From: Phallusia mammillata
Lineage: Eukaryota
NCBI GenBank assembly: GCA_965637545.1
Contig: OZ281494.1
Location: forward strand, 18,104,001 to 18,168,000
Length of the DNA: 64,000 nucleotides
Direction: 5' to 3'
In this document: positions 9,376-59,298 of the stretch, one piece after another
Layout of the letters: every line of letters starts with the position of its first letter
Position numbering within the stretch: the first letter of the stretch is position 1
The notes under the pieces: generated by a model
The model's input: the letters and a program-made list of their open reading frames with translations, nothing else
Told to the model about the DNA's origin: nothing
The model's database searches: none
Position numbers and translations under genes: made by a program

Positions 9376-9637
9376 CTTACAACGTGTTTTCACGCAAAGG
9401 TAATGTTTCATAGTTTACTGGTTTAAACAGACCAGCAAATAATTCGATGGCCACAACGTGTAAAAACCTTAAAAATCATTAATTAAAGGGAATGAAATGT
9501 CTAGGCATGGAGTCGAACCGCTTTTCATAGTCATATGTGCGATCGGGTCGGCTTTTTTCGAAATATTTTATATTTTGGGGGTTTAAGCGGTTTAAAACCT
9601 GTTTTCTCAAATTTTCGTTCCACTCTATATCTATAAA

Positions 9638-10020: not shown

Positions 10021-10232
10021 TCTATACAGCCTTGGTGGCGATACCAATAAATAATGTAGGCCACATTTTTACTGTAGTGAATTTATAATTAAGAATTGTT
10101 TAAATTTTTATGGAATAAGACGAAGCGATACCGTTTATCGGTAGAACTCGTGCGGAACAACAAACAAAAAATCATAGACGCTAGATGGGCAGCTAGTCTG
10201 TGTAATGTGTATGGGGTTGCCTTTCTGTTATT

Positions 10233-10325
10233 TTTGGCTAAATGGCCAGGCGCGCCTGACCCACATACAGACATAAAAAAACTTGATCGGAATTCGTCTC
10301 CGGGAGCTTTCTGAGTTCGAACCCA
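10233..10325 (+). repeat. tRNA-derived (SINE-like) repeat, copy 1
   Basis: A-box-like TGGCTAAATGG and B-box GAGTTCGAACC; homologous to the minus-strand copy at ~16102..16196. Confidence 0.5.
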
Positions 10326-11328: not shown

Positions 11329-12096
11329 ATGGACTTCTTAGACGATTTGTTGCAAGCTGAATCGTTGCTAAGTGATCTCGAAGAAGACAGTGACGACGAT
11401 ACAACTGATCCGGGTTGCTGCCTTTGTTTGTTGATTTGTCCGTGGAAACCTAAAACGTTTTCTGCCCAACTGCAACTCCAAGGCTATGGGTTGTTAAAAC
11501 GCAAGCAGGCCATGACAAAGTATACAGTCAATCCTTTCGTGAATATTTCAACTGAGGGCATTACCAAACCAAAATACGTGAACACTTTTACGGAACAAAG
11601 TCGCAGCGAGTTACAGCCTACAAATGCGTTGTTGCCTTTAGATGATAAAGCTCTCGCAACATGGGCCTTTTCAAGAAAAACAGGAGACACCAACGTTTTA
11701 AACAAATGCAAAGTGGTGGTCTTTCGTGACGATAGCACAGAGTTTTGGAAACCCAAAAGTGGCCAAGTTTTTGTAACAGCAGTATCGTCCTACACACCCG
11801 TATGGACTGTATGGAAAGACGCAAACAACTATTGCGTTTTTGGCATAAATTTTAAAAGAAGAATGTACTACATTGCATGGTGCAACAACAAGGTACGATT
11901 GGTGCTGGGAACAGAACCAGTTGTCAGAAATCCTGTGACCAATGACCAGCGGTTTTTTAAAATGAAACACGATCGGCTGAGCAGAAAGAACATATTCCAG
12001 CACATCGGAACGAAGCAATTCCTAGCTATTGGATCAGATAAATTTCTGACCCTTGTTCCAATGAAGCCTCAGGCCCAGGGCTGGAAGTTGCAGTAG
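11329..12096 (+). CDS. Leaderless beta-trefoil-like protein B1 (255 aa from ATG 11329)
   Basis: ATG 11329 (MDFLDDLLQAES) matches the start of paralog 14786 (MDVVDDLMQAES). Acidic tract DLEEDSDDDTTD, CCLCLLICPWKP motif, then a beta-rich C-terminal domain. Confidence 0.8.
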   Translation: MDFLDDLLQAESLLSDLEEDSDDDTTDPGCCLCLLICPWKPKTFSAQLQLQGYGLLKRKQAMTKYTVNPFVNISTEGITKPKYVNTFTEQSRSELQPTNALLPLDDKALATWAFSRKTGDTNVLNKCKVVVFRDDSTEFWKPKSGQVFVTAVSSYTPVWTVWKDANNYCVFGINFKRRMYYIAWCNNKVRLVLGTEPVVRNPVTNDQRFFKMKHDRLSRKNIFQHIGTKQFLAIGSDKFLTLVPMKPQAQGWKLQ

Positions 12097-12233
12097 TGGA
12101 ATTGTACCAACATTCAGTTAAAATACAAAAACCTTTTTGGTAAACTGATATTTTTACAGCTGCACTTCTGTAATAGTGCCTAGTTTTAGATATCAGAGCC
12201 ATATGTCTGATACTAATTTTGATTCGACTACAC

Positions 12234-12664
12234 CAGCGGTTCTCAACCAGTGGGCCATGGCAATTTTACAAGAATAATGGCTTGGGGAGGAATTGAGAAG
12301 GAATGTAAATTAATTTGAATTATTCTATTTACGGTATAAAGTTACTTTGAGTTTCTGCAACCCCGTATGTTTATGATGTAATAAACTACTGTGTGATTAC
12401 AATAAAGCCAGATAATAGCAGAATATCAATTGTCCAATTATTCGGTCATAACTGAAAGTGCTTGATTAAAGAAGGGAAAGTGCTGTTTTATGATTTTTTG
12501 CATTAACATATTTTGAACTTATTATCTGTTTGAAATATGTCCTGCAGTTTTTTTGTTCTGAACCTACTTTATAGTTGTTTCTTTCTTTCATAAAAATTTA
12601 CTGGGCCACAGAATTTTTGTGCAATGAAAGTGGGCCACGAAAGAAAAAAGGTTGAGAACCACTG
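12234..12664. mobile_element. hAT-type MITE
   Basis: TIR CAGCGGTTCTCAACC / GGTTGAGAACCACTG; TSD GACTACAC vs GACTATAC (7/8). Confidence 0.85.
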
Positions 12665-14785
12665 GACTATACACCATTTTACCTTTTCCTATGTTTACAT
12701 AATACCCGCAGGTACTCAAGATCTTTGTATGTGAGATGTTTATACCATTATTTATTTGGAAGATGTTTTTTCGTTTTTATTTAAATTATTGATTTTTCTT
12801 GTTGATATTTTTATTTGAAACAATTTCTCCACTGTTAAATCTTAAATGTTTTTCTGTTCAATTTTTCTACCTGTTTTACTGTAAATTTCAAAATAAACCA
12901 AAATCGGCATTTTCCTAACGTGGGTAAAAACTTGGCTTAGACATACAAAACGAAGTGCATCTTTAAGAACTGGCTTAGACATACAAAACGAAGTGCATCT
13001 TTAGTCATTTGTTAAATCCCATTTGTTTAATTGCAGCACGCGAAGAGTTCGGAGGAAAATAAGTTAATAAACAAAACGCATTAAAGGCAAAATTCAAGTC
13101 TGTAATTATTAAAGTTTTTTTACAAAAACTGAGAAAAGGGACAACTAATATTTTGATTATTGAAATGTGGCAATTTGTTTATGTCTGGCAGTCTAAATTC
13201 ATTCAGGTCTTGTTTTTTGTAGCCGTCACAGTATGCTTAAAGTTAAATTTTTGTCTAAACGTGTCTAAACGTCGAAAAGTGTCTCAAACAACAGTATCAA
13301 TTAACTTTGACGTTGTAATTTCCATGAAATGTCTACCCGAGTATTTGATTTATCATTATTCGCCCATTAGAATTTGTTATTGATTCGAATGACATTTGTG
13401 GGAACTTTGGCAGATTCAGTTTGATCGTCACCATTTGAGGGGTATTTAAAGTGTTACTTGTCCACAATATGGCAATTAACCAAGTTAAAAACATAATAAA
13501 AGGCGATGCCATTATTGGAATAAGTTTCGTATTTGAATTAGAGGTCGGTTTATCTATTTACAAAATGCCACACAATGCTTCCCTGCTTTATTCATACCGC
13601 GATTGTGAAGTAGCGACTATTTTGGAAATGATAACGAATATGGACATTGTCACTTGTACAGTGCGTTGTAAGACGGTGGGAGGAAGAGCCCTAAAAGAAT
13701 AACGCTGTTCTTTCACACCCGACAGTGCTTCAGCATTGTCTTATATTCGCGTCATTCCAGAAGAAATAGTCAACACGCTATGTCCTGTTTAAATTTGAAC
13801 ATTGTAAGTCAATAATGGCACAACTGTCTGTTTCACCAACAACTGTTTTAGTTTTAATCTTTTTACTACTAACTGCATGTGGTCCAACCACAGACAATTA
13901 CATTGGCCGAGCACACTGCCTTCGACAACTCATTTATGTCATTTGATTTTTCTGTTTCCTTTTTCGTAGGCCCGTGGAAGTTTTGTTGTTGGTTTCAAGT
14001 AATTGGGTTGTTAGTTTTATGTAAATTCCGTTTAATATGTGAATTTATCTGTACTTTTCCCATTAAATTTGAAATCCTTGTTATATTGGTTCTATCCCAT
14101 ATCAATACCTTGTTTTAGTTAGAAGCAGGCTGTTTCAACAAGCATTGTATTATTTAAAAAAATGCTTTTACTTATTAGGGTAGTAAACAAGTCGCAATTT
14201 TTGCTGACTGAATAAAGTACTGAAATCCCTTGAAAAGATTTCCTTTTGCTATATGCTTGAACTAAGTCAAGTTGGTTGAGTTAAGGGCTGTGCGCCTATC
14301 AGAACTACATACATCTGTCTGAATATTTGCATTGATCCACAGTCTAAGAACGAAAGGATGGTCTCACAACCGACAGCATTGAGTGCACTGTAAGACTGTG
14401 GTGAATGGCCTTTCTACGTTCTCATCCCGGAATTCCGCCTGTTTTGCAAAATACTAAACAAATTGCTTTATTTTTTGCTTTACACGATTTGTCTTATAAA
14501 GGTGTTTGTATTGGTGTCAACCTGACGTTTCAAGCAATATGAAATCTGCTAAATGCATGTTGACAACAGTCGAATATTGCAGAACTGATTTTGGATTAGC
14601 GTAATGACGTCACACAATCAGGACAGCTTCTTGCCTATAATAGTTTCCTGTCAGCACGCTTTGAAACACTGACAAAAAATTAAACACCAAGTCGTAGCAG
14701 ATGGCTTGAGAATTAGGAACGCACGTCAGTCCAGAAGCTAGACCATACGAGTCCCAGTAAAACACGTCTTGTAACTTTTGACGAC

Positions 14786-15595
14786 ATGGATGTTGTGGAC
14801 GATTTGATGCAAGCTGAGTCGTTGCTAAGTGATCTTGAAGGAGACAGTGACGACGATACAACTGATCCGGGTTGCTGCCTTTGTTTGTTGATATGTCCGT
14901 GGAAACCTAAAACATTCGCTGCACAACTGCAGTTCAAAGGCTACAGATTACCAAAACGCAAGCAGACCATGGCAAAGTATACTGTCCATCCGTTCACCGA
15001 TTTTAGGACACGCGGCATTACTAAACCAGAATACGTAAACGTTTTTACGCAAGGTTACAACGAGGCTCAGCACTGGAATCCTGACATGGAAGAAAATCGT
15101 ACTAAAGCGTTGTTGCCTATCGAACAAGCAAACAATAAAGACAAAGCTCTTGCGGCATGGGGTATTTCGCAAACTACTGGAGACACTAATGTTTTTAGTA
15201 AATGCAAAGTGGTGGTCTTTCGTGACGACAGCACAGAGTTTTGGACGCCTAAAGGTGGTCGAGTGTATGTCACAGCAGGGTCGTCCTACACACCCGTATG
15301 GACTCTTTGGAAAGACACGAACTACCATTGCGCTTTCGGCATAACTTTTAGAAAAAGGATGTACTACATTGCATGGTGTAACAATGAGGTAAAACTGGTG
15401 CGGGGAACAGAACCAGTTGCCAGAAATCCTGTGACCAACGACCAACGATTCTTTAAACTCGAACACGATCGGCTGAGCAGAAAGAACATATTCCAGCACA
15501 TCGGAACGAAGCAATATCTAGCTATTGGATCGGATAAATTTCTGACCCTTGTCGCAATGAGGCCTCAGGCCCAGGGCTGGAATTTAAAAACGTAG
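14786..15595 (+). CDS. Leaderless beta-trefoil-like protein B2 (269 aa)
   Basis: Close paralog of 11329..12096, with many synonymous differences and in-frame indels confined to the middle segment. Confidence 0.8.
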   Translation: MDVVDDLMQAESLLSDLEGDSDDDTTDPGCCLCLLICPWKPKTFAAQLQFKGYRLPKRKQTMAKYTVHPFTDFRTRGITKPEYVNVFTQGYNEAQHWNPDMEENRTKALLPIEQANNKDKALAAWGISQTTGDTNVFSKCKVVVFRDDSTEFWTPKGGRVYVTAGSSYTPVWTLWKDTNYHCAFGITFRKRMYYIAWCNNEVKLVRGTEPVARNPVTNDQRFFKLEHDRLSRKNIFQHIGTKQYLAIGSDKFLTLVAMRPQAQGWNLKT

Positions 15596-16101
15596 ACATT
15601 ACCAAGTTCCGCAAGGTAATGTCGCTGTTTGTATTTGCATTTCACGGTTTTGTTTAGCATCTGAAAATAGTTATATGTATTGTGAAAAATATATGTATTG
15701 TGAAAGGGCGCAGTTTATATGATATATGCCTTCATTGGTAAAGGAAAAAAAAACATGTTTGAAACAGAGTTGTAAGCGGGTTCAAAATTCGAGTCCGAAC
15801 CCGGCCCGAACCCAGAAGTAAATACCCCAACCGGGTCCGAACCCGAATCGTTTTTGAGAAGCCCGTTTTTTCCCGAAACTTTGATTGGCAGGCCTCTCCA
15901 TAAAAGCCTACAAAACGTACTACTGTACATAATATAATTGAAAACAGCGTTTTAGGGCGGTTGGGCATCAAGTAAAGTCCAGCAACTAGCTACGTAGTTG
16001 GGTAATTTTCTCCAAAACAACAACAGACACAGAATTTGAAGTCATCGCATTTTTTAGAGATAGATTACTCAGATTGATCGTAATTCAGAAACGCATTTTT
16101 T

Positions 16102-16196
16102 ACGAGGTTCGAACCCAGGACACTCCTGGGGACGAATCCCGACCAAGGTTTTTTATGTCTGTATATGGGTCATGCGCGCCAGACCATTCGGCCAAG
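16102..16196 (-). repeat. tRNA-derived (SINE-like) repeat, copy 2
   Basis: The minus strand reads TGGCCGAATGGTCT (A box, tRNA-Leu/Ser-like) ... GGGTTCGAACC (B box); homologous to 10233..10325. Confidence 0.55.
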
Positions 16197-18494
16197 TTCC
16201 GGCCCAGAAACGTATTTTTTGAAAATTCTCCACTGCAGCATTGAGGCGCTATCTGTGGGCGAGACACTTCCTTGTATTTGTATCTTGCAAGTATCGTTTT
16301 CAAGTTGGTTTCGATTTTTTGTTTTGTGTCATTCATAGGCCTTCTAAACAAATAATCATGAAGCGTTTCAATGGCGCTATTGTTGTATTTTGTTTTCTTG
16401 CACCAACACCAGGGAAGCTATACACTGTTTTCAATCAAAAGACAATGTTGCTTCCTGTTAATTAAACTCTTATAATTTTGTTTTTATCTTTTATACACCA
16501 ACAAGTAGCAGCTGTTTAAAACTTTCAGTTTTTACTCTAGAACGCAAAAAAGACCGACTGGTTTATTGACGCAAAACCCTTTATTACACACAAAACAATG
16601 CCTTGCCACAATCGAAAATTTTGCAGTGTTTTGGTGTTGATTCTCATATTTCAGAACATTAAAAACTACAATTATCGTTGTCAAAACACTGGACTTTTGC
16701 GGCCATGTTGAGCCACGCTATACTTAATCGATGAATATTTATCGCAAACATCATTGGTTTTACGTTAAGTTATGTGCTGGCATATATACTGTAGTTTAGG
16801 TTGTCATGTAGTTGGTATAAACGCACAATTAATTTTTTTCCAAGTCACGTAAATAAGCCTCTTTTTTCGCATACCGTTGCGTCTTATTGACCTCAGACAT
16901 GTTTTACAAATCAAATGCTGCTAATATACATGGCATCAAAAGAAATGTAACAAATATTCGATAATAGTCAACGCTTTACTTCGGTTGTGTACAATCAAAG
17001 GTTGATTTGACTCAACCACGGGATCACAAATTCAAGAAATGATAACGGGCAATCATTTTGTGGCCACACTCAGAACGTGTCGTATTATAACACAATTATC
17101 CTTTAAGAACACAAATTGAGTTACATATGTGGATTATTGAAAACAACTGCTAAATGAACCTACCGTAACCCAAAAACACTGAGTGGGTTCCACAATTGCA
17201 TCCTGTAACCCGAAGCAATCCGTTATATTTGGACAAAGTGTTGTGACAACATTTTGCTGGTCATCTGCCTTAGTTTGTGTATGGTTTATTATCGTCGTTT
17301 TTTAGCTTTTATTGAGCAAGGAAACAAATCGTTTATCAAATATATAGTTGCTTTGATTTCCGTTTCTACTTTTTAAACATTTGTTCTGTCCACAAACAGT
17401 CTCATGCGCTTACGGTTGTACAAAAGAATGAACACACTCTGACGTCGTAGGTGGAGGGCTCGTGATGTCATAACAACGGATGAGCTACCTCGCTGTATCT
17501 GCTTCCCCTTTAGCGATAAGATACATACACAGAGTAACAAACTCGGGTTGTAATAACTTTGGAAGACTGTATGCAAGCACATCAAGAAGCAAGCTTTAGA
17601 TGGGTTTAGAAAAAACCCTCTATCGACTGAATTGTGACAAACAGAAAGTTAAGATAAATTAGTACCATGCAGCATGGATGATGAAAATGGCTGAAGATAT
17701 TATGTAACAGATGTGTTATTGTGTCACCATGACACAAAACGATTTTCACCTTACGAAAATTGCACAAAGTTGCATATTATAGGACTGTGTTACCTTTTTT
17801 AGGTCACGCCACCATACCTGCTACAAAAAGAATTCTCACGTGTGAAGCATTACGTAAACCTTGTGCAGTCAACATATATAAAAGAAAAAAGTTCGTTATT
17901 TCCGGTAATTCAACATTGGGGTCAAAATAAAATAAAATAAAAATATCCACTTCGATTTTATAATTATGTAGAAGTATAACGATGATATAATGGAGCCTTG
18001 TTCTAAATAGTAGTTTATCCGGTGTGATCCATGGTTCATAAAACGGTTGCCAAAGTTACAACTTTTATGTTTGTTATTTTCCGTTGTAAAAAGCTTAGAT
18101 ATATGTTTATATTTTATAGCCTAAGCTTAAGAACTTCTAGATTTAGTTGATCTAACTTTGTAGATTCAATTTACCCATTAAAAGATCAATTATGCATCAC
18201 GTCAGCGTGCTATGTGTGGCATGTCTATTTTGTACTGTTCGCACACAATAAGTCTATATACATCTAGTAGCCGGAAGCTAGCCCACAAGGTTCATAATAA
18301 ACCTGGGTCACCAAATCTTATTTTATTAATGCTTGGCCGCCAGTATAGCCAGGAGATCTATTTTTAATACATGTGCACGAAAGCATTATATTGTGCTCGC
18401 GGCAAAGTGTGCATTCCAGGATTGAGTACATGCCACACATTTTATTTTTATTTGTGCATTAAGGTTATGTGTGTAGGTATCGCCTAAGTCAAAT

Positions 18495-19247
18495 ATGAAT
18501 ATTAGTTTGGGTCCGGGCGAAAAGCAACCGCTGATCTCTAACTACGATTCCGATAGTAGCGACGATGAAGAAGACCAGTCTCGCTGTTGTCTGTTTCTTT
18601 TTGTCTGTCCTTGGAAGCCAGGTGCTGTGAGACAAAGACTTCAAGAAAGTGGGCTAGATTTGAGAACGAATAAAAAAGCTCCGCGACCGCACACCGTCAA
18701 TTACTTGCAGGAATTTCCTATGACCAGCCTAGTTCGTCCCGTGTGGTCGACACCCCACCAAGGCCAAGAAGGTGAAGTGACCGACGTGTTACCATACTAC
18801 AAAGATATACCCGACGACAGAATGTATTTTAACTGGGGCAATTATGCAACGGACAGTAATATTTTAAGAAAAAGTTTCCTACCGATTCGGCGCAAAAAAG
18901 GCCCAGAATCGTGGCACAAACAAGGAAGGGTGATCATGGTGAAGAACGATAATGAACCACCAATGTGGCACGTCTGGAGTTCTAAAAATGGCGACTTCAT
19001 TTTCGGATATCCTTCAGGTGGTAAATTTTTTTTCGTGACAGTAAACAATCGGAATCTGGTACGTTTGAAAAAAGGCACCGAGCAAGAGGTAACCAGAGAT
19101 GAAAGACTGTTCGTACGAGTCGCTGAAAGAAAACGTAAAGTTCTTCGTCACAACAAGACCGGAAAATATTTAACCATCGTGCCCAGACTGAAAAGATTGG
19201 CGTTGAGGTCGGAAATTAGTAAGGCAGAAGAATGGGACATTCTGTAG
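18495..19247 (+). CDS. Leaderless beta-trefoil-like protein C (250 aa), distant paralog of B1/B2
   Basis: Shares the acidic tract (DSDSSDDEED), CCLFLFVCPWKP, 'hTVN..', 'W.vWs....FG......ffI...nn.VRL..GTE...D.RlF' and 'H..T.kYL.I' blocks with B1/B2. Confidence 0.8.
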   Translation: MNISLGPGEKQPLISNYDSDSSDDEEDQSRCCLFLFVCPWKPGAVRQRLQESGLDLRTNKKAPRPHTVNYLQEFPMTSLVRPVWSTPHQGQEGEVTDVLPYYKDIPDDRMYFNWGNYATDSNILRKSFLPIRRKKGPESWHKQGRVIMVKNDNEPPMWHVWSSKNGDFIFGYPSGGKFFFVTVNNRNLVRLKKGTEQEVTRDERLFVRVAERKRKVLRHNKTGKYLTIVPRLKRLALRSEISKAEEWDIL

Positions 19248-20183: not shown

Positions 20184-21143
20184 ATGGACGAACGTGTGAT
20201 TTCTGTGGATGCTGATCCAACAGGCTTCGACTCATTGCTCTTCGAGCTGGATGCAAATGCGTCAAGTGATAGCGACATTTTTGTGAACCTTCCCGATTCT
20301 TCGATACCAATCAGCATTGTTCTTGACAATGTTGAACTGAATTCCACTGAACAATTACCAGAAACTGGAACAGTGACAGAAACAGTTGAGGTTTCGCCGT
20401 TGACTACAAAGAAATCAGAGCTCTTTGTGACAGAAAGCGAAACAGATTTGGAGGTAATTGAAGAACCAAATACAGACGAGTCGGCCGATGCACTCGCAAA
20501 AGAGGAAGAACTGAAGGAAGAAGATTTGACAGAAAAATCTGCTAAAGACGAGAAGCAGACGGAGAAAGAAAAACAACAACAGTTGACGGAAGAACCAGCT
20601 GAAAATACTGCTGAAAAAGAAGAACAGCTGAATACGAAAGAACCAGTTGATGAAACTACTGAGAAAGAACAACAACTAATAGCGGAAGAGAAACCTGATC
20701 AATCTACCGAAAAAGATCAACAGAACGAGGGCCTTTCTGATGACTTAGTCAAAGAAGAAGAACAAACGACCGAAAAACAATTAAATAATCAATTTCCTGA
20801 CAACGAGAAACAAACTAACGATCAAGAACCCAAAGCTTCAAAAGAATTGAAAAATCAAACCGTCATAAAAGAAGAACCAGTTCAAACTAGTAGTGCTGAA
20901 AACCCACAGCCGATTGTAGAAACAAAAAGTGAACAAGACAAACAAGTTAACATTTTGCCTGAAAGTGATTTAGCTGATGACGAATTTCCGGCACCACCGC
21001 CTCCAGAAATGCTGCACGACGAAGATAAGCTCGACGAACAAGATATCGCAAATGGATGGAACAGTGTGAAAAGTCCACGTACAAAAAAGAAATCTTGGTT
21101 CTTTCGATTATGCTCGGGCAAAAAGACAACAGCAATGGACTAA
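20184..21143 (+). CDS. Uncharacterised acidic low-complexity protein (319 aa) with DEFPAPPPP motif and basic/aromatic C-terminus
   Basis: 960-bp uninterrupted ORF, E/K/Q/T-rich; ends KKKSWFFRLCSGKKTTAMD. No family recognised. Confidence 0.65.
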   Translation: MDERVISVDADPTGFDSLLFELDANASSDSDIFVNLPDSSIPISIVLDNVELNSTEQLPETGTVTETVEVSPLTTKKSELFVTESETDLEVIEEPNTDESADALAKEEELKEEDLTEKSAKDEKQTEKEKQQQLTEEPAENTAEKEEQLNTKEPVDETTEKEQQLIAEEKPDQSTEKDQQNEGLSDDLVKEEEQTTEKQLNNQFPDNEKQTNDQEPKASKELKNQTVIKEEPVQTSSAENPQPIVETKSEQDKQVNILPESDLADDEFPAPPPPEMLHDEDKLDEQDIANGWNSVKSPRTKKKSWFFRLCSGKKTTAMD

Positions 21144-22155: not shown

Positions 22156-23320
22156 CTAGGCCTTGTTTCGGATTAAAATATGATTTAACGCTGATTCCAT
22201 TTTGTCGAGATCATAATGCATTGGACCCCAACCTCCTTCGAACACCACAATGCCATCTAAAACGATATAAAGCCGTTCTGGTAAAGCGCCATACGCCAAA
22301 CAAGCTTCATTATTCATATTATCAACTAAAACAGGCACATTTAGCTCTGGAACGGCATCAATTAACATCTGAGCGGCATCCGCTCGTTCTTGAAAATTAC
22401 GGTGGTTGTTTAACTGGTATTTGTTGTCGGGAACCACCCAACCCTCGTTAGGATGAGCTTCCTGTATATACACGACAACGAAATCGGCGTCTTTTCGATA
22501 ATTGTCGACAAGTTTGGCAAAGCTTTGTATCTGCGTAAAGAGAACTAACAAATAGGTTTAAAGCCTTTAAAATTTTACAACACGAATTATACAAACAACA
22601 ACCTTGTGTAACTGCACCAGGTAACACAAAATAGAAAAAAAAGGAAAAACAGACGTAAACGCAACAGCAAGGTACCTTTGCCATAAATGGCGGTCATGTA
22701 CACGATCCAAAATTGATCACAAGTGGGCGATGTTCTTTCATAAAACTCAGCAACGGTTTGTCGATAGAAGCTTGCAAATGGTTGACGACCATGTCAGGCG
22801 CTTTCTCGTCCAGTTGTACGTTGTTAAATTGAATAAGCTTGTTTCTAAACACTTGAGGAAATGTTGTTGTCTGAAAAACATGTTAACAAAATTAGCAACA
22901 CATGTAGTTAACACACATCCAATATGTACAGCACGATTTTTTTATCTGGTGCTGGTGGAGTAAGTTAGTTGACAGCTCCTGGAGGAATCTTGCAGTAAAG
23001 ATTGAAAGTGAATAAAGTGCATTTAAAAAGCCAAAATGCATTTAAAAAGTTTATCATTTTGGAGAGCTTGAAGTAATCCATCCAAAACTTTAATAATAAA
23101 AACATTGACTGAAATTGTAAGCAGCCCGACGTTTTTTTTAATTTAGTGCATACCAGTTACAACTTACCACATGCAACTTAAACTAAGTTAGTTAATGCGT
23201 TTATTGTCTTACTTTTACAATTCTTTTACTTCCCGTTTGAACTCCAAAAAGCCACTTCGATAGTTTTGACATTTTCAGCAAGAGTGTTGCTTCGCGCAAT
23301 AATAACATGAAAATTAGCAT
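22156..23320 (-). CDS. DIO: Iodothyronine deiodinase (selenoprotein)
   Basis: Exon 22870-22676 reads ...EKAPD...RPLVINFGSCT[TGA]PPFMAK, with Sec TGA at 22696-22694. A GT-AG intron follows, then exon 22530-22156: IQSFAKLVDNY...FVVVYIQEAHPNEGW...YGALPERLYIV...GGWGP. The putative first exon 23320-23213 is less certain. Confidence 0.93.
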
Positions 23321-35190: not shown

Positions 35191-35963
35191 CATAACTTGC
35201 AAGACGAATGTCTTTTAAAGCGACAAAATGCAAAACACACACATGTAAAACAGCGATATACTTCAGATTCAAAGGTTCCTTTTACAAACAAATGTATGGC
35301 ACGGCCATGGGCTCTCCTGTCTCAGTGGCCGTTGCCAACATGGTCATGGAGTCTGTGGAGGAACGCGCCTTGCAAACTTTTGCCAAACCACCACGATTTT
35401 GGCGACGATATGTAGATGATACATTCTGTGTCATTCAGAAACACCAGGTTACAGAATTTCTGCAACATTTAAACAATGTGCAACGAGGAATTGCGTTCAC
35501 TATGGAATTGGAAAGCAAGAACCGGCTTCCTTTTCTAGATGTGGAAATTTTAAAAGCGGCGGATGGTAGGCTTTCCACGCGGGTGTACCACAAGCCGACC
35601 AGCACCATGCGCTATTTACACTTCACATCCCATCATCCTTTGTACCAGAAAAGGGCTGTTGTCAAAGCACTCAAAGACCAGGCCAGACGCTTGACGACAG
35701 ACCCAGCATTGCTTCAGGCGGAGTTGCACAGGGTAAACGAGGCCCTGCGGTTAAATGGCTACCCGAACTGGATTCTCCGTGATCACAAAAAGGTTGCACG
35801 GAAAGAAATCCAGTACAAAGAACGTGCCTTCGTCACCTTACCTTACATACCAAGGTTAACAGATATAATCCGTCGCATGTTAACCGATTTCGGAGTATCG
35901 GTTGGGGTCAAACCAGCAAACACCCTACGTCAGATGCTGTCGCACCCAAAAGACCCTCTAGAT

Positions 35964-36457
35964 CAGGGGTGTGCAACCCGCGGGCCACAATCCGGCCCGC
36001 CAAGCCATTTAGTGTGGCCCTCAACAACACTCTGATTCTCTGATTAGTTTTCGGTAAATCTCCTAAGTTGCTATACGTAACAAGAAAAATGCTAAACCAG
36101 CGCATGAAACTTAATACACCCAGACCTATGGTCTTCTATTCGCACTAGGTGCTTGTTGCGTATCTATACCGAATGTGACGTAATATACCTCTTTGTCTAG
36201 TAAACAATTACTTTGTTGTGAAAGGCAGTGTTGCGACGAAACCTACTTGCACCTAACATTTTAAAGTTGATTTTGAAAGCAAAATAAAACAAAACGCAGG
36301 GGTGTGGAAATAATATCGACATGATATTATAATGCAAGCCGCACAAACAGTAGTGTAAAAAAGTGTAAATACGGTACATGAAAAAAACTGTGTGGCCCTC
36401 GCTTGATGTCCGAAATTGGTTATATGGCCCACCGCCGAAAAAGGTTGCACACCCCTG
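35964..36457. mobile_element. hAT-type MITE interrupting the Penelope ORF
   Basis: TIR CAGGGGTGTGCAACC / GGTTGCACACCCCTG; perfect TSD CTCTAGAT. Removing it restores the frame HPKDPLD|ATATRGVVYAIPC. Confidence 0.95.
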
Positions 36458-36916
36458 CTCTAGATGCTACTGCAACTAGGGGTGTGGTGTATGCTATACC
36501 GTGCGGGGAGTGTGACGAAATATACATCGGTGAGACTGGTAGAAGTCTAAATACGCGCCGGAAGGAGCACGAAAGGGATGTGTGCAAGAATGATGCGAAG
36601 AAATCAGCGTTGGCAAACCATGCAACGACTCACCACCACAGCATTAATTTTTCCGCTGCTCAGGTGTTGGTGAAGGAAACTGATTACCACAAGCGAAGTT
36701 TCCTAGAGTCTTGGAACATCCATTCACGCGCCAACACAATGAACGTTAAAACAGATGTTCTAATGCCGATAAATTATCGGTCGCTTTTACACCACTGAGC
36801 TTGTTTTATCTCTACGGTGGTGCGAGTTTGCAGCGCGCGATCTTGTTATCGCTGTTTTACATGTGTGTGTTTTGCATTTTGTCGCTTTAAAAGACATTCG
36901 TCTTGCAAGTTATGTC

Positions 36917-39339: not shown

Positions 39340-45141
<5,802 letters not shown>

Positions 45142-46448
45142 CGCGGAACATATTTATCGTTAAAATAAATTTTGTCGTTTAACTTTTGTGTCTTGAAAGT
45201 AAACCACATAAAACAACTTAGGCTCACATGGGAACCCTATTGTTTGAACGTGTGTAGTACAATGTATTACCAAAATAAAACCTGTATGGCAGATTTTGTG
45301 TAAACTTAACGTGGCACATGTAAAATCGTTCCTTTTGTATGTAGCGATGGCGTCTATATTTACTCCGAACGCCGCAAGAAATACCAATGTCATTGACTCG
45401 GTTGTTTATGGATCCTCGTCCTGTCTGCTTTAACTTGTTGAACGCTGAGGCACGAAGCCGAACTTTAGATGTATTCTTGAATAAGTACGACAGCATGTAT
45501 CGCTTCCACACAATACAGTAAAACTCTGATCCAGTGAGAACACTGAACCAGAGAGAACACATTCTCTTTTTCTCTCTCTCTTCCCAAAACTGTTTAATTT
45601 CAAGGCGGAAAACAGCACTATTTATACTCCCACAATGCAACAGTAAACTTCTTCACTTTCATATAAATTACGTTTGGTAATGTTACTTTTAACTGGGACA
45701 TATTTGCCTTTTTCATATGACGAATATTCTTGAAAACGTGCACGTTGACGGCAGTGGGAACGAACAGGTATATCTGGCGAAATACAAGTCAAATTGTCTA
45801 AAAAAATATAACTTCACTGATGCGACCAAAACATGTACTGCAAGACCGTGTGAAATTTTTGTTTTATGGACTATTTACGTTTGATTTTGTTGCAAACGCT
45901 GCTGTAATGCAGCGTGCAAAAGTACAAGATGTGATTCGTGAAAAATGTTCGCTTACGGCCATTTACGTTTATTCTTTATATTGGCTGCAAACGCTGCTTT
46001 CATGCAGCGTGCAAAATACAGAAATATTGCATTTATCTAGTTGGTCTGCTACAAGTGCTTTCTTACCGAAATAAATGAATTAGCTTCAAATAATTTTGAT
46101 GACAAAAACAAACGATAATCCAAAATATTATTTTACATCGTTACATGCAACAGACGCATTGTTTTTGTTGCACTTTGGCTTCATGGCGTGGGACAAAAAC
46201 ATTTAATTCACTTAATATTCTATTTAATCTGTGTAAAATTGTCATCCTTCCAGTGGCTGTGCTAAAGTTGCAAACAGTGTCTCACAGACAAAATAAGAAA
46301 CAATGTGAATGTATTCCGAATAAACGAAGCTAGTCAGCAAGTCTTGTGGTTTGGTAATTAAATGTAAACATTATCTAAATAACATCACGAAGCTAGTCAG
46401 CAGGGACAAACGACATTCATGAGGCGAAAGTACAACATGGATACAAAG

Positions 46449-47390
46449 TTACGACTGGTTGTTGACGAACTTAAAAACACTTGCTTCATCCCTGTCCACC
46501 ATTTCTACTACGTCTTTGCCTGATTTCAGGTATTTACCTACCCTTTTCATTTTGAGCATGAATGTACCGTTATTAAGCGGCGAAACTGTGAAAACTGCGT
46601 GGCGAAGCGATTTGGAAGCTTTTAAGTCTTTGGTGTCGATTAGAACCAGTTTGTCATGGCTGACGAATCTTCGCAAAGAGCTCTCTGTGTGTGAAACCAA
46701 TGCCAGAACATAGAAGTTGCTTGAATCAAAAGACTTTAGACCAAACATTAAGTCATTGCTTTCCGCCACAGTGACGACAAACCAATGAGGACAAAAGAAC
46801 TGCTTGTCGCTGATGGCTTCACCTTCCGCCTTTAGCTTGTCTACGGTAAGAGCCTCCTTGGTCTCAACGTTCACCAGCCTAGCACGGAACATTTCACCGC
46901 TGTTAACCACGCTGTCCTTGCCCAAAGTTCTAAAAATCATGTGCTGAAATTCGCCAACAGTCAATTCTTCATCGTTTTCCTCTTCATCGTGTGGTGTAAC
47001 TTCACTTTGATTGTTATCTTCATCTTCCTGTTGGTTTTTTTCATCATCTGTATTTTGACAAACCAAAATTACTGGTTTGTCGGTGTTTTGTGTTGCATCT
47101 TCCTCATCTTCTACCACCTCTTCAAAGCTTTCTGATGCAACAAGAGTTTCATTTTGTTGCTCATCTGGATCGGCAAGACACGTTTCGTCACATTTGTGGT
47201 TTTCTAGGATAACAAGCTTTTTGTTATCGCACTTACAAGTTTCAACATGCACATTGCTTGGTCCCAGCATTGTAACACTACCATCTGTCAAGAAGTTAAA
47301 CGTAACTTCTTCAAAGGCGAAACCGCCGGAGCATCGGCATTGGCAGAAATCCATTACCGATTTTTGTTCCGAATGCAGTTCAAGCCCCAA
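46449..47390 (-). CDS. Leaderless protein with long acidic linker and C-terminal beta-trefoil-like domain (313 aa), protein D
   Basis: Single 942-bp ORF: Cys-rich N-terminus (FCQCRC), E/D-rich linker, then a ~145-aa beta-rich domain ending AVFTVSPL...FMLKMKRVGKYLKSG...EASVFKF. Confidence 0.7.
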   Translation of the reverse strand: MGLELHSEQKSVMDFCQCRCSGGFAFEEVTFNFLTDGSVTMLGPSNVHVETCKCDNKKLVILENHKCDETCLADPDEQQNETLVASESFEEVVEDEEDATQNTDKPVILVCQNTDDEKNQQEDEDNNQSEVTPHDEEENDEELTVGEFQHMIFRTLGKDSVVNSGEMFRARLVNVETKEALTVDKLKAEGEAISDKQFFCPHWFVVTVAESNDLMFGLKSFDSSNFYVLALVSHTESSLRRFVSHDKLVLIDTKDLKASKSLRHAVFTVSPLNNGTFMLKMKRVGKYLKSGKDVVEMVDRDEASVFKFVNNQS

Positions 47391-48048
47391 AAGTTTCTGA
47401 CCACCATTCTACATCTTGTCAGCTTTATGTAGCCAAAAAGAGCCTATTTGCTCAACGGAAACACGTCGTAAAGCATGTTTAGCGTGTCAATCGCGTAAAA
47501 GGATGTCACCTTAAGTACAACCACACGCCGTTTTTTATATTTTTTATTGACTAACTTGTTGTGGTCGCATATGCCGATATGACGTATGAACATATTCATA
47601 TTTTTATAGCTGCGCCCTAGCTGTCAAAGTAGTGATGTATTAGGTATGTGCATGGCTGTAAACACGTACGTCAGTAACACGTCCGCGAGACGCGCAGCTC
47701 TTTGCATTGCGTTTACGATTGTGATGGAGAGCCAAATTTAGAATAAAACAAATTGAAATCAACGTCTCTTCAAACAAAGTAGGCTACCTTTTTAAACAAA
47801 GTGGACTACATGTAAATTGCAGCTGCCTTATGAATTTTCACGACCGAAAGTCCCCTGAATTTTTCTTGTGAATCTAAATTGAAGTAAATATTTTGCAAAA
47901 ATTATGTGCATTTTAATAAAATGAAGCATTACAGGAACGGCACGCCCAAGTACCGTAGCACCAGGGGTGGTAGCCTGAGCCTATACGCTTATCTCCGACG
48001 CGGTGACATTCCTCTAGTCCAGTGGTTTGCCTCGACCTTCTGTATAGT

Positions 48049-48434
48049 CAGGGTTGCTATCGACTTGAAACCAAAAATAAGGACAACATCCGAAAAAATA
48101 ATTTTTCATGCGAAACGAAACAAACGTTTTTGAACAAATCTTTGCATTTATACGAGCCATGACATAATATTTGCAACATTTTGAGAAGAAACAATCTGTT
48201 CAAGCAACTAGTTGTCCGTAGAAAATACTAAGTGCATCTCACAACAGGCCAGGTCTAGGTTCGCTTCTACCTGTAGCAGGGATTTGACTATATGAATTGT
48301 TGAAAATAAGACAAAATAAGGACTACAGTCAAAAATAAGGACATTTCTTAGAAATAAGGACAATGAACTTTTCCAAGACATAGCCCTTCAAAATAAGGAC
48401 AAATCTTAGAAATAAGGACGGTATGGCAACCCTG
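48049..48434. mobile_element. hAT-type MITE with AAATAAGGAC repeats (copy 2)
   Basis: TIR CAGGGTTGC / GCAACCCTG; perfect TSD TGTATAGT; near-identical to 9638..10020. Confidence 0.9.
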
Positions 48435-48729
48435 TGTATAGTGCTGACATCGTTCTTATTTTAGTGAATTTTTGATGAATTGTAAAACTATAAAAGCAGT
48501 GGTACGCCACTGCATGTCAAGAATGGAAAGTGAAAGCAACAGGCGTGTCCATGGTTATTCTACAAGGATTAATAACTTTATTTTGCACCCCAAAGCTGCT
48601 TAAACATTTTTCTTCTAAGCTAAAGATAGTGGTATTTAACGTTTTGAAATGCATTTCACAGTAAACGAGTAAAATCTATTTAATAGAGGATTTGCATGAA
48701 TGGAAATATTCCTAAAGAACTAAATTTTG

Positions 48730-49251
48730 GGTGCCTTTGAATACTACAGGTGCGCTAGGTACGCTTGGTACCTCGCTGGGAAACCGTTTTTCGTGCAACG
48801 CAACTTAAAAGTAGTGCAGGTAACTCTTATTGGTGCGATTACACTCATGATAGGTAGGCTACGACGTAACTCGAAAATACTGCAGCTGTCCTGTTTTTAT
48901 GCGACAAATCGTAAATACTGCAGTTAACGTTAAAACACGCAAATAATGCCGGAAAAGTGTTACGATAGTCCCAACACACACCCAAAACCCTTAACCCTAA
49001 ACTCTAACTCTAACCTTAACACAAACCTAACCCTAACCTTAACCCAAACCAAACCTTAAAACCGGTAACTACAAGTTTACTACAAGTAACTACAAGTTTC
49101 TTCGCTTCAAAGAAGGTTACCTGCACTATTTACGGGCTTTGTTGCATTAAAATGAGTAACCTGCAGTTAACCAAGCGAAGTACCAGGCGCACCAAGCGAA
49201 GTACCTGGTGGACGAAGCGCACCAAGCGGACCTGCTGTATACGAAGGCACC
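48730..49251. mobile_element. MITE with internal degenerate (CCCTAA)n tract
   Basis: Imperfect TIR GGTGCCTTTGAATACTACAGGTGCGCT / AGCGGACCTGCTGTATACGAAGGCACC; hexamer tract at ~48985-49045; no clean TSD. Confidence 0.7.
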
Positions 49252-49854
49252 GCTAAATTTGCACCGAAACAATCGACCTTCAGTTTGGATGTTTTGTTGT
49301 CACACAATGGTTTTACAAATGTTTGTTTCTTACGTCATATAGTTGTTTTCTGTATAGTATGTAATTGTAATACATGTTAACTGGGATGGTAAATTTGCTG
49401 CAAAGCTAGAGATTGTCAGTGAAATTGTAGCTTGTCGTAGTTGAATAGCCCGTAAATATGTCATATTGAATCTTAGTTATGCAAAGTCAGCGTACTTTTT
49501 CTTCGCTCAAAACGCTATGCTGCCTAAATGCCGCGAAATGTTCAAAAATTTTGTAATATGAAAGAATTTTCTTTGTAACCGTAGATGGACGCAGCATTAG
49601 TTGTGAAAAAGCCGACTTGGTAATGAAGTCTTTAACAGAGAGACAGCACTAAAAATTCGGTCATAAAAAGTTTCTGTGGTGCACCCTCCTCTACGCCTGA
49701 GTAAGCGCCGACTTTGCCGAATAGTGAATCCAGCATCTAAGTACTGCTGTTGTAGATGCGACTGTTATTTGAAAAAGCATGATGCACTCAAAGCTAAAAC
49801 CTGATTTTTACTTTTCAAATAGATTTACACCTATTACGTTGTAAATGACCAAAT

Positions 49855-52800
49855 ATGATCTCACAAAAAGTGCTTGTTTTTGTTTGTGTGCTATTTGTTT
49901 CTATGGGTTGGTTAACTCATTGTTGGCTAGTACACCACACCACACACAGTTTCACATATGCAACTCAGAGGGGCTACATAAAACTTTTAAGACTTGAAAA
50001 GATTGAAAATCAGTTTGGAACTAGAGAATGGCGAGCATACCTGCCTGAAGTTGGCGATCTTCTTTCCAAAATCGAGCAGGGTATTGTCAAGTGGCCTGTG
50101 GACATCAAACTTACAACAGACCCTAAGTCATCTTTTATAATGTTGCGCAATAGCAACAATCTTAAAGTTGGTGATAAGTTGGCTGGTAGCATCCAAGCAA
50201 TGGATTTCCGTGGTAAAGCAAAAACACACGGCGGAGATCACTTTCGTGCCAGGTAAAGTTTTTCGATTTTGTGTTTTTATGGCAAGAACTCGCTTAGTCT
50301 CATCACGACATTTCTAAATCGTATTGCGCTACTTTTAGGTTTGGTGTGACGTAGGCTACGTTCAATTTTTGGTGCATTTTTGGACATCTACGTTGAATTT
50401 TTGGTGCATTTTTGGACATCAGGAGCGAAAGCAGAATTTACAAACTTACAAGAGTGGCTGTATACTTGTTTCTTATGTTTTGATTTTTTTAATTCAAGTA
50501 ACTCTTGGATGTCCGCGAATTTTATGTGGGCACAGCAGCTTAGCAAAACAAAACTTAAAACGAAATGGTACAAAAATACCGTCGAGTAAACAAACCAAGA
50601 CATCAGTCGCAGTTGTAAAACACGCTAAGACAATTTGTTTTTAAACATTTACTTTGTTTATTTATACAACACAAGCGAATATATACAAATCTCCTTTTTA
50701 GATTTATTTAGCAATTAAAAGTGTAAAACAAACAAATTACTGATAACGCAATAAACGGTGGTTACGCAGTGTAGTTGCACATACTGTCAGATAATAGGTT
50801 GCAAAAGTTAGTTGTGGTTAAATGAACCTGGAGGTGTAACACACCGCAATCACACGTGTGACCCGGAACCTAGTAATTACAATTTTTAAGTACCACAGCT
50901 ATTTCCCGCTGTACATTAGTTATCGCTGTCACGGCGAAATAAAATCAATGTATTGCATTTACTTATAAATCAGTTTTTGTCTTGAAAACAGTGACAGATA
51001 AATCGCTTGGAACGATAGTAAGTTCCAAATACTCGGTTCTCCCTTTAACCAAGACGTTATTCGCTATCCTGCCAAAATCGGCTATTGGACTGTTTTTCTA
51101 ACATGTGTGGAGAAATACGTTTCAGTCTGAGAAAACAATCCTTCGATGAAAAACGAATTCAAAAACGAAATCAAACAATATAAAATATAATATATTATGT
51201 GTTGTTGTTTTTTTCAATCCGCCAAATTGCGTGTAAAATAGTACCAGTGTAAAGGTAAGCCGACCTTCTTGGCAAATTACATTATGAGCGTTTCAGAAAC
51301 CTTAAAAGTTCGCTTAAATGCAACAGCGTAAACATTTATATCGGGCCAACTGTTTTGTTTCTATTTAAAAGCCACCAAGCGGAAGTTTTGTAAATAAGGG
51401 ACATCACAAATATACTTTCGAACGACAATCGTGCTAATTTTTGCCACATTTACATAGACTTGTCAAACTCAATGAATTCGGACGAATTACTGAAGACGGT
51501 ATAGCAGTGATGGTGAAAGACAACATGAACGGTACTTACGCTTGGAACACGATTATTTCATGGCCAGGACGGAGCAAGCTAATAATTGAACTTGTTCACT
51601 CGAGCGAAGCGGTCGTGGATATGGTTTTGCAGACGGCGTCGCAAGAGAACAAACAAAGACTTTTTCTTGCACAGCTTTCAAATGGGGCAGCCGTCAACTG
51701 TGACATCGTATTAAGGTTTGGCGTGCTTAGTTTTTTTTATACTTTGTTTTGGCATTTTCGATAAGAAACGTTCGGTACAACGCAATTTGTCTGTCGACAA
51801 AATAAATAAGGGGCTCCTTCCATAAAACTAAAGTAAACCATTTTCTAAAAAAAACATAAAATATTGTGTACCCTCCACATGTAATAAGTTGCCAACTTTT
51901 GGAAAGTAATATGATTCACCACTCGATGTGTTTTACGCTGATAAACCCTTACGCAGAATATATTCAAATCTACTGTTGCGCTGTCTTTAAATATTTATAG
52001 AAAGCAAATTTTTCTTGTGAGTATCATCATTTTTTCCAATATCGGTTCTCTCACTTTTTTCGTGCTTACGAGCATTAAAACATAGCCTAGTAAGATGACG
52101 TGTACAGGTGGTGATGTCAAACACACAGTAGGGTGACAACGCTGTTCACAATCGCAAAAACATGTAGTATTTTTAAGCGTTGGCATAGTCTGTGGTAGGG
52201 TGGCATTGAGACCATACTCTCACACATTTTTGGTTTTGTAACTCGATGTTTCAAATCAACTGATATAGAGGCACAGCAGTTTTGCCCCTTCGCTTTTTCC
52301 TCCAAAAAAAATCTGTGCCTCTCTAAAAATTACTTGCGGATAAATATTTTATTATGTCATTGAAGGTAAACGTACATCAGTCAAACGGAATTTGCATTTC
52401 CCTGCATATTGCATCCAAATATTTATACTTTTAAAGCCTAATGTTGAATACTAATACTTGTTTTTATTGTTAGGGATAAGTCGTTAGCATGCGATTACTC
52501 TAGACCTGAAAACGGAATAACATGGACTTGTAAAAAAATGTCAGTTAACAGTTCATGTTCAGAGATTGTGATGAGAAATAAAAACCCACAAAAACCAGAT
52601 GGCCGCTTTGAAAATAAGGAATTCTTTCAAGAAAACATTACGTGGCAAGTCGAATTGAAGAATTCAGGACAAACATTTGTCGTCAAAGGTGACATCAGAG
52701 ATACGAAAAGCACTGAAAAATGCGATTTATCGACGGGAATGCGTAGTCTTATCTACCCAAACTATTATCGTCCCAGTGGATTTTATTATCAAGGAAGATG

Positions 52801-53479
52801 GATTTCTCTGCTTTGCGATAACAAACAGAGAGATCTGAAACGAGTTCAAAACTGCCTACAGAACACATCTGTTTATTTTATTGGCGATTCCACCATGAGA
52901 CAATGGTACTTTAGTCGGTTAAGGTTGGCTTTGAAAGTCGACGGATCTGCTTCAGATGTTAAAGGAAAGTACTGGTCTTTGCCCCAAAACTCGTTTAACA
53001 AAGAATATCATATCGAGTTGCATTACAGAGCACATGGAGATCCACTATATAACCCAGGTCCTCCTTCTAGTCGACCTTATGTTGTAGATTCACTGAAATC
53101 AATCACAGGCAACTCTAAAACAGTTGTTGTGCTGAACATCGGTGCACACTTTCTACTTTACGACCCTTCTGTCATACTTCAACGAGCAGCAGGGATAAAA
53201 AATGCGCTTATTGATTTGCACAAACGTCTACCAAATGTTAAAATATTCCTTCGTGGGTCGATTCGTTACAAAAAGACTTCTCAGCTTTGCCCAAGTGAAT
53301 GGTTGTACATGAGAACAGATCGAATACTTCGGTGGTATTTTTCTGATTTACCGTATGTTGGATATATTGACACTTGGGAAATGACAACACCGTTGCCCCA
53401 GAATAACGTCCATGCAGGTTCCGAAACTATTGATCAATTTATTTCTTTGTTTCTATCGTATACCTGCCCCGATATTTAA
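49855..53479 (+). CDS. NXPE: NXPE family (neurexophilin and PC-esterase domain) protein, copy A, intact
   Basis: Exons 49855-50252, 51458-51715 and 52474-53479 splice in frame. N-terminal signal-anchor; KTHGGDHFRAR, DNMNGTY, VHSSEAV, FIGDSTMRQWY and DTWEMT...NNVH motifs. Confidence 0.88.
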
Positions 53480-57924: not shown

Positions 57925-59298
57925 ATGAACTTGCAAAAAATTATGCTGGTTATTGTTTGTGCCCTATTTGTTTCATTGTGTTGGTTAACTCGTTTTTGGT
58001 TGGTATATGAAACTGCACACAGCTACACATATACAAACCATAGGGGTTATGAAAAGCTTTCAGGACTGGAAAAGATTGAAAACCAGTTTGGAACAAGAGA
58101 ATGGAGAGCATACCTGCCTGAAGTTGACAATCTTCTGAACAAAATTGAGCAGGGTATCGTCAAGTGGCCAGTGGACATCAATTTTACAACAGACCCAAAA
58201 TCATCTGTCATCATATTGCCTAGTTTAAAAAATCTCAAAGTTGGTGATAAGTTGGCTGGTAGCATCCAAGCAAGAGATTTCCACGGAAAAGCAAAAACGC
58301 ACGGCGGAGATCATTTTCGTGCGAGGTATTTCTTTTTATTTTATGCCATTACGGTACATTTTTTACAGTATTTTTAAGCAGAAAAGTAGGCCTACCCCAA
58401 AGTTTACTCAGGCCTTGCCACACGGTATACTAGTGATCGACGGACTGTGTCGCTTGCAGGTTTGGTGTAACATATGTTTTATTTTTGGACACATTCAACA
58501 AAAGCAACATATGAGTAGCAGTGTACATAAAAGGTTATTGTTAATTTTATTTCAATATTCACAGAGTTTTTTCTTAGACCCCTTGGGTGTCCGTAACTCC
58601 TTGCTGGGAAACCACACAGTAGTGTAGCGCAGTAAACGTTTAACAGAAAAAGAAGAGGAATTAAGCAAGCACTGTTATGTGTAAAAACACGAGCCAATGT
58701 TTAACAGAGAGCATGAAAAAGTTTGCAATTCTGAAATAACTTATACACCAGCAACCATTTATTACCCCCTAATAGGGGGCCCCTATACATATTGCGTGTT
58801 GAAATCTATCTTGCTTGTCAAGACCATTTTTACAAATTTCACAACGTTAGAAAAAACTTTTTGTATATCAGCCAATAGGAAAAAATACAATGTAGGAGAC
58901 ATTTGGTGTCCAAAAAGTGTGGGAGTTATTTGATTTTGTTCCCTATGCATTTTAAGCATGTATTGGGTGCCATTCAAACAGGTGCTATCAAGAGAAGCCT
59001 TTAAGTAACATTCGTACTGTATTTTGACACATACTTGTAGACTTGTCAAGATGAAAGATTTAGGACAGATGACTAAAGATGGAATAGCAGTGATGATGAA
59101 AGACAACATGAACGGTACTTATGCTTGGAACACGATTATTCCATGGCCAGGACGTAGCAAGCTAATAATTGAACTTGTTCACTCGAGCGAAGCGGTCGTG
59201 GATATGGTTTTGCAGACGGCGTCGCAAGAGAACAAACAAAGACTTTTCCTTGCACAGCTTTCAAATGGGGCAGCCGTCAACTGTGACATCGTATTAAG
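57925..59298 (+). CDS. NXPE: NXPE copy C, exons 1-2 (57925-58325, 59041-59298); exon 3 not within the window
   Basis: Open, spliceable exons nearly identical in protein to copy A. The intron-2 homolog is interrupted at ~59940 and resumes at ~63536-63640. Confidence 0.75.

Follow-up and report, generated by a model that had tools for sequence, protein, structure and literature searches.

The gene described here, ORF6, lies on the minus strand of a 64,000-nucleotide stretch of the Phallusia mammillata genome (contig OZ281494.1, positions 18,104,001 to 18,168,000), which is referred to as the window. ORF6 is a real, transcribed, single-exon protein-coding gene, and relative to the sequence libraries searched it is an orphan. 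On balance, we favour the reading that it is a lineage-restricted gene encoding a leaderless protein of 34 kDa, in which a cysteine-containing segment and an acidic linker are followed by a likely 12-strand beta-trefoil of the FGF/IL-1/fascin type, and which would constitute a sequence family of its own. An earlier note on the same DNA had proposed that ORF6 is a sixth, more ancestral member of the trefoil-like A, B and C genes located elsewhere in the window, and that it resembles an interleukin-1 precursor (pro-IL-1).

The mechanical open reading frame (ORF) spans positions 46449..47390 on the minus strand and has 313 codons with a TTG start. An in-frame TAG is located six codons 5′ of the TTG. 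The first in-frame ATG, at 47354-47352, is in good context, with G at both -3 and +4, and the protein starting from it has 301 residues and a mass of 34.0 kDa. The ORF of 313 amino acids given in the earlier note exists, but the 12 codons upstream of the ATG were wrongly counted as part of the protein. When the window was block-shuffled 200 times, the longest ORF starting with ATG had a mean length of 117 amino acids and a maximum of 192, indicating that the 301 codons of ORF6 are far beyond the length expected by chance. The fraction of guanine and cytosine (GC) is 0.44 in ORF6 and 0.35-0.37 in its flanks. The window contains no runs of N. A second copy of ORF6 was not found in the window by tblastn. 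The possibility that ORF6 originated from a transposon was rejected, because no terminal repeats frame the gene and the window contains no second copy.

Fifteen public sequencing runs from five studies, all with one organism label, contain at least part of the stretch. Four small runs (X6, X8, X10, and X12, from two studies) were compared with positions 44000-49900. The GT..AG joint 45037>45099, which corresponds to the last intron of DIMT1, is present in each of the four runs, and they therefore represent complementary DNA (cDNA). The contigs covering ORF6 are located at 46316-46971 and 47351-47528 in X8, at 46372-46801 and 46779-46931 in X10, and at 46664-46955 and 47166-47344 in X12, whereas X6 provides a single 872-nucleotide contig (Table 1), which is identical to the window and has a depth of 208. 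Between them, the contigs of the four runs span 46316-47528 with zero joints, indicating a transcript of at least 1.2 kb that is not spliced within the ORF. The intronless structure that had been read from the uninterrupted ORF is thus confirmed by colinear cDNA contigs. A loose end of X10 at 46931, when reverse-complemented, matches what we take to be the end of a template-switch oligonucleotide followed by GGG. The loose end would place the 5′ end of a cDNA on the minus strand, and the RNA is therefore probably sense to ORF6. The depths of ORF6 and of the adjoining DIMT1 exon are 208 and 23 in X6, 5.6 and 30 in X8, and approximately 4 and 26 in X12. Contig depth reflects expression poorly, and the approximately 50-fold spread of the relative depth between the runs is a rough hint that the expression of ORF6 is regulated rather than of the housekeeping type.

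The ORF6 protein can be divided into three parts (Table 1). The N-terminal segment contains seven cysteines, at positions 4, 6, 8, 40, 42, 55, and 59. The acidic linker of about 70 residues is probably disordered and includes a single DxxD site, in which DEED is followed by A (residues 83-86, positions 47097-47108). The C-terminal domain contains a basic patch formed by residues 242-280 with a net charge of +9. No signal peptide or membrane segment was identified in the protein: the highest hydropathy of a 19-residue segment is 1.09, and that of the first 20 residues is 0.11. Because there is no secretion signal, the product of ORF6 is made in the cytoplasm, and the protein is probably intracellular. 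The earlier description of a protein with no signal peptide, a cysteine-rich start, and a linker rich in glutamate and aspartate agrees with these values, and the beta-rich character that it gave to the C-terminal domain is consistent with the low-confidence models, in which residues 154-301 are predicted to be mostly strand.

A beta-trefoil is a moderately probable assignment for the C-terminal domain. The low-confidence models contain predicted strands at approximately residues 156-161, 191-196, 200-210, 213-220, 237-240, 249-259, 264-276, and 282-296. This spacing is compatible with a candidate 12-strand beta-trefoil that would have an extra hairpin near residues 234-251. Of the 13 PDB matches with E up to 10, 12 are symmetric designs of the Symfoil type derived from FGF-1 (3p6j, 3p6i, 3o4b, and others), and each of them aligns to residues 245-284 of ORF6. 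In a pairwise comparison with the Symfoil unit, residues 248-281 have a score of 64 and a z of 12.5 over shuffles. The 11 identities among these 34 residues include H, F, SP, NG, LK, and G-x-YL. Trefoils represent, by a rough estimate, one hundredth of the PDB. Since the trefoil class had been named before the search and is this small, the Symfoil match is a modest but real pointer to the fold. Furthermore, the domain has a weak internal repeat, in which unit 2 can be aligned to unit 3 (z 3.2, p 0.016).

Several results weigh against the proposed organization of the protein. AlphaFold2 prediction without an alignment failed both on the whole protein and on residues 151-301, where the predicted local distance difference test (pLDDT) gave 38.1 and 42.5, respectively. 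A Foldseek comparison of the model of residues 151-301 with the PDB returned noise (best E 0.2, TM at most 0.25). The Symfoil match amounts to approximately 12 bits per unit, with an E value for the individual unit (i-E) of 0.9-2.5; the E of 1e-7 for the whole sequence overstates the match, since the same unit occurs three times in the target. Units 1 and 2 of ORF6 compare with the Symfoil unit at the level of chance (z 0.4 and -0.3), and the PDB matches at E up to 10 include no natural protein of the FGF, IL-1, fascin, or ricin type. Searches of the libraries gave no orthologue of ORF6, and the hint of regulated expression depends on contig depth. If the end of the X6 contig inside the ORF is real, the first 15 codons, including those of the CxCxC motif, may be replaced or lost. 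The steps of masking, cleavage, and acylation considered below are pure inference. The trefoil-like domain suggested in the earlier note is plausible in view of one Symfoil-like unit, a weak repeat, and the strand spacing, whereas the structure prediction and Foldseek search that it had recommended supported neither a trefoil nor another fold.

The searches for relatives of ORF6 were negative throughout. Neither the whole protein nor its parts have a match in Pfam and NCBIfam at E up to 10, a range in which the majority of matches with E greater than approximately 0.1 are removed by the HMMER filters. A word search of a collection of 5.8 billion proteins returned nothing for the whole protein or for residues 1-75, and there is no record of the exact ORF6 protein. 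The same search was also empty for B2, a paralogue from the A/B/C genes of the window. The empty search for B2 and the missing record of ORF6 indicate that the libraries barely cover this animal, and the absence of matches says little about other tunicates. A full HMMER search of 1.84 billion representative sequences with the C-terminal 169 amino acids gave two matches, with E of 3e-13 and 1e-8. Both were rejected as chance, because they are repeat proteins of 7153 and 1804 residues, the E values of which are summed over 47 and 7 repeats; the best single repeats score 9.5-10.4 bits with i-E above 4e4. Relatives of ORF6 were not found in bacterial and archaeal genomes or in metagenome contigs, and residues 151-251 and 1-75 had no match in the PDB, nor did the profile of the A/B/C family.

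The five A/B/C genes resemble ORF6 in their general make-up. They are single-exon and leaderless, and their products have a cysteine motif and an acidic tract in front of a beta-rich C-terminal domain of approximately 150 residues. They also have a PxW...FG motif in common with ORF6. In contrast, the cysteine and acidic parts are in the reverse order: the CxCxC of ORF6 (residues 4-8) precedes the acidic tract, and the motif CCxxxxxCPWKP that follows the acidic tract of the B and C members is absent from ORF6. In addition, the strands differ, and a distance of 27 kb, which includes a deiodinase gene, STAT, a retroelement, and DIMT1, separates ORF6 from the A/B/C genes. Comparisons of ORF6 with the A/B/C proteins by blastp gave E of 3.8 or worse. 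The probability determined by hhalign was 0.4% for the alignment of all five genes, 0.2% for B/C, and 0.1% for A. The Smith-Waterman z of the ORF6 domain is 2.1, 3.0, 3.4, 1.2, and 2.9 for A1, A2, B1, B2, and C, respectively, which is marginal yet consistently above the -0.15 +/- 0.53 obtained for nine unrelated proteins of the window. The registers of the pairwise alignments disagree by 13-22 residues, and bacterial beta-repeat controls reach z of up to 2.8 against the trefoil paralogues. The data fit a common fold type of ORF6 and the A/B/C proteins, and common ancestry is not supported by the sequences. The A pair and the B/C trio, located at 73-19247 of the window, are themselves barely related in sequence, with a z of 1.1-3.0, which is about the level of ORF6, and an hhalign E of 0.03 over 72 aligned columns. 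If A and B/C are one family, the case for it must rest on structure, not sequence.

Interleukin-1-like proteins of the ancient IL-1anc type have a PDZ domain at the N terminus, in most members, and a trefoil at the C terminus that shows partial conservation of an F/L-E-S motif and is divided among three to five exons with conserved phases (PMC13736523). In other animals, IL-1anc genes are linked to those of IL-1R-like proteins, GCC2, ESD, EIF2A, and TRAF3 (PMC13736523). A survey from 2026 identified IL-1-type cytokines across animals, with no candidate in Ciona, Botryllus, and Styela; the screen of tunicates was anchored on PDZ domains and BLAST (PMC13736523). A diverged protein without a PDZ domain, such as ORF6, would therefore escape it. 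ORF6 resembles IL-1 superfamily proteins and IL-1anc in being leaderless, in its length of approximately 300 residues, and in its layout, in which an N-terminal part is followed by a linker and possibly by a C-terminal trefoil, with a DxxD site upstream of the domain. It differs from them in all the sequence marks that were compared. The Pfam family IL1 (PF00340) matches neither the whole ORF6 protein nor its C-terminal 169 amino acids at E up to 10, and IL1_propep (PF02394) and PDZ match neither residues 1-68 nor the whole protein at the same limit. A pattern scan found no FES or LES throughout ORF6, the gene has none of the trefoil introns of IL-1anc, and no IL-1anc-linked gene, such as those of IL-1R-like proteins, GCC2, and ESD, is among the genes identified in the window (64 kb, part of the ORFs scanned).

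The likeness of ORF6 to FGF is limited to one of the three units of the domain. ORF6 is leaderless like FGF1/2 and FGF11-14, and the number and spacing of its strands are compatible with 12 strands; the basic cluster in its third unit is presumably at the place where FGF-1 binds heparin. It differs from FGF in its long cysteine-rich and acidic N-terminal extension. No match of ORF6 to Pfam FGF (PF00167) was found at E up to 10, and the PDB matches include no natural FGF chain. The most diverged FGFs of appendicularians still score 1e-7 to 1e-13 in Pfam FGF, and a loss of Fgf1/2 has been reported for ascidians (PMC11733497). Lectins with a trefoil fold provide a further comparison. ORF6 contains no QxW motif, has a single tryptophan, at residue 191, and does not match Pfam Ricin_B at E up to 10. 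Leaderless cytoplasmic beta-trefoil lectins, such as mytilectins, SeviL, and fungal ricin-B-like proteins, are small and single-domain, with no cysteine-rich or acidic extension. ORF6 has in common with them the missing signal peptide, a possible trefoil, and the occurrence in one lineage of a marine invertebrate, but differs in the lack of QxW, the one tryptophan, and the presence of the extension.

It is doubtful, though deserving of attention, that the C-terminal domain has another beta-rich fold, such as an immunoglobulin-like sandwich or a barrel, and that the hints of a trefoil arose by chance. The lack of a significant match to a natural trefoil, the restriction of the Symfoil matches to a single 34-residue unit, and the unconverged AlphaFold model speak for such a fold. 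Residues 205-288 are moreover 29% identical to an 85-residue repeat, which was read as immunoglobulin-like, of the 7153-residue protein found by HMMER. That repeat match, however, is attributable to chance: its best score is 9.5 bits with an i-E of 8e4, and the E of 3e-13 is summed over 47 near-identical repeats. The size of the domain, its internal repeat, and the F-x-hydrophobic strands at approximately residues 155, 191, 254, and 294 may suit a trefoil better than an 85-residue sandwich. The view that the transcript is non-coding with an accidental ORF, or that ORF6 is a dying retrocopy, is hardly credible. It would account for the missing homologues, for the four upstream ATGs between the TATA box and the start codon, and for the lack of a canonical polyadenylation signal, but not for an ORF of 301 codons where 200 shuffles produced at most 192, the rise in GC over the ORF, the good start context, the domain-like layout as opposed to uniform low complexity, and the high depth in one run.

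Descent from a common ancestor with the A/B/C genes, with ORF6 as a very diverged sixth member that either stayed behind or was relocated to the other side of STAT and DIMT1, is unlikely. The general make-up, the distance of 27 kb, the alignment of PxW...FG, and z values of 1.2-3.4, which are above those of the window controls and no lower than the 1.1-3.0 between A and B/C, speak for a sixth member. However, the blastp E is at least 3.8 and the hhalign probability at most 0.4%, whereas A against B/C reaches E 0.03; the alignment registers shift by 13-22 residues, and the bacterial controls come up to z 2.8. The order of the cysteine and acidic parts is reversed, and the genes are on opposite strands with at least four unrelated genes between them. 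The profile-profile comparison that the earlier note had called for thus does not bear out its suggestion of a sixth or more ancestral member. The related proposal that ORF6 is a tunicate pro-cytokine of the IL-1 superfamily, the trefoil of which would be freed by a caspase cut in the linker, filling the reported gap in the distribution of IL-1anc, is very unlikely indeed. The missing leader, the length of approximately 300 residues, the three-part layout, and one putative caspase-type DEED-A site in the linker are consistent with it, and the published screen would overlook a diverged protein without PDZ (PMC13736523). Nevertheless, all testable marks of the superfamily fail (IL1, IL1_propep, PDZ, F/L-E-S, and introns), the identified neighbours STAT, DIMT1, NXPE, and deiodinase are not among the genes linked to IL-1anc elsewhere, and the sole sequence hint is to an FGF-type unit rather than to IL-1. 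The resemblance to the helix of pro-IL-1beta on which the earlier note based its pro-IL-1 reading is loose, and its suggested comparison with IL1_propep gave no Pfam match at E up to 10. Also very unlikely is that ORF6, perhaps together with other leaderless orphan trefoil families of the genome, descends, with fast evolution in tunicates, from a leaderless trefoil cytokine of the IL-1anc or Fgf1/2 line, having been retrocopied to a single exon and lost its recognisable sequence marks, and is released by linker cleavage.

If ORF6 encodes a lineage-restricted leaderless protein with a C-terminal trefoil, the trefoil may serve as a binding module. The basic patch in its third unit (residues 242-280, net charge +9) may bind a polyanion, and the acidic linker (net charge -26) may mask this patch within the same molecule. 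Unmasking could be achieved by cleavage of the linker, at its one DEED-A site, or by its displacement. It is possible that the N-terminal CxCxC motif is fatty-acylated or binds metal, and thereby tethers the protein.

Table 1 Positions of ORF6, its parts, and the A/B/C genes in the window
Feature	Position	Strand	Basis or remark
ORF6 coding sequence, 301 codons and TAA stop (46449-46451), no intron	46449..47354	-	ORF, length, cDNA
12 codons upstream of ATG (bacterial TTG start), most likely 5′ untranslated region	47355..47390	-	ORF reading
N-terminal cysteine-rich segment, residues 1-60, begins MDFCQCRC	47175..47354	-	sequence; short strands predicted with low confidence
Acidic linker, residues 61-131 (71 residues)	46962..47174	-	net charge -26, isoelectric point 4.05, no predicted secondary structure
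C-terminal mostly-beta domain, residues 154-301 (148 residues), net charge +3	46452..46895	-	low-confidence models
Symfoil-like unit, residues 248-281 (starting KSLRHAVFTVSPLNNG), within basic patch	46512..46613	-	PDB search, pairwise test
Motif PHWFVVTVAESNDLMFG, residues 189-205, the sole stretch aligned by hhalign to A/B/C (PvWxxW...FG)	46740..46790	-	not significant
Probable 5′ untranslated region, three upstream ATGs at 47476, 47414, and 47407	47355..47528	-	X8 contig 47351-47528
TATAAAA box, putative promoter, approximately 75 nucleotides upstream of furthest cDNA contig end	47602..47608	-	sequence only
3′ untranslated region without canonical AATAAA	46316..46448	-	cDNA contigs X8 46316-46971 and X10 46372-46801
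Extent of lone high-depth X6 contig; AG before and GT after on coding strand	46437..47308	-	cDNA, sequence
A/B/C trefoil-like genes, five	73-591, 6507-7142, 11254-12096, 14786-15595, 18495-19247	opposite to ORF6	

The 5′ leader of the ORF6 transcript may have a regulatory function. A fourth upstream ATG is located at 47570, just 5′ of the leader covered by cDNA, so that four ATGs separate the TATA box from the start codon. The last upstream ORF (47354-47407, minus strand) has 17 codons, and its TAA overlaps the main ATG in the sequence TAATG. The upstream ORFs could control the translation of ORF6, or trans-splicing could remove the leader. The ends of the X6 contig may correspond to the alternative borders of an internal exon or, within the ORF, to a spliced-leader acceptor 46 nucleotides inside the coding sequence. 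The next in-frame ATG after the start is codon 29. Contigs of the other runs cross both end points colinearly, and an imperfect hairpin is located on the same spot. The sharp ends of the contig were not accepted as proof of splicing, because the other runs cross them and holes in the contig cover prove nothing. The 3′ untranslated region contains an exact 16-nucleotide direct repeat at 46324-46339 and 46387-46402 (ACGAAGCTAGTCAGCA on the plus strand).

The genes identified in the window besides the A/B/C array are those of a deiodinase, STAT, a Penelope-like retroelement, DIMT1, and NXPE. An ORF of 319 codons at 20184-21143 of the plus strand, flanked by the trefoil array and the deiodinase gene, is rich in E, K, Q, and T and matches nothing in Pfam. 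An iodothyronine-deiodinase-like gene has its C-terminal exon at 22156-22551 of the minus strand (Pfam T4_deiodinase, E 8e-37), and the part that would carry the selenocysteine codon is outside this exon. Between STAT and DIMT1, at 35208-36798 of the plus strand, two ORFs have matches to reverse transcriptase and GIY-YIG nuclease, both below the Pfam cut-offs; the pairing of the two is typical of Penelope-like retroelements. Similar ORF fragments (VAIDLKPKIRT...) at 47906-48440 and 9537-9905 belong to a dispersed repeat. Positions 48295-48434 are common to many cDNA contigs of three runs, which then diverge into different sequences, and short AAAATAAGGAC repeats are present at 48074-48419. Tandem NXPE-like genes occupy 49855-53479 and 57925-58377 of the plus strand. 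The exons encoding their N termini, at 49855 and 57925, are closely paralogous to each other, and a match to NXPE4_C with E 8e-51 is located at 52538-53479.

Tunicates are the closest living relatives of vertebrates. Because IL-1anc is reported to be missing from tunicates and Fgf1/2 to have been lost in ascidians, leaderless trefoil-like orphan proteins of sea squirts are natural suspects for the missing molecules. Alternatively, such orphans may be independent inventions on the same scaffold. If the trefoil of ORF6 is confirmed, the combination of a cysteine cluster, an acidic linker, and a basic trefoil would represent an unusual self-masked architecture.

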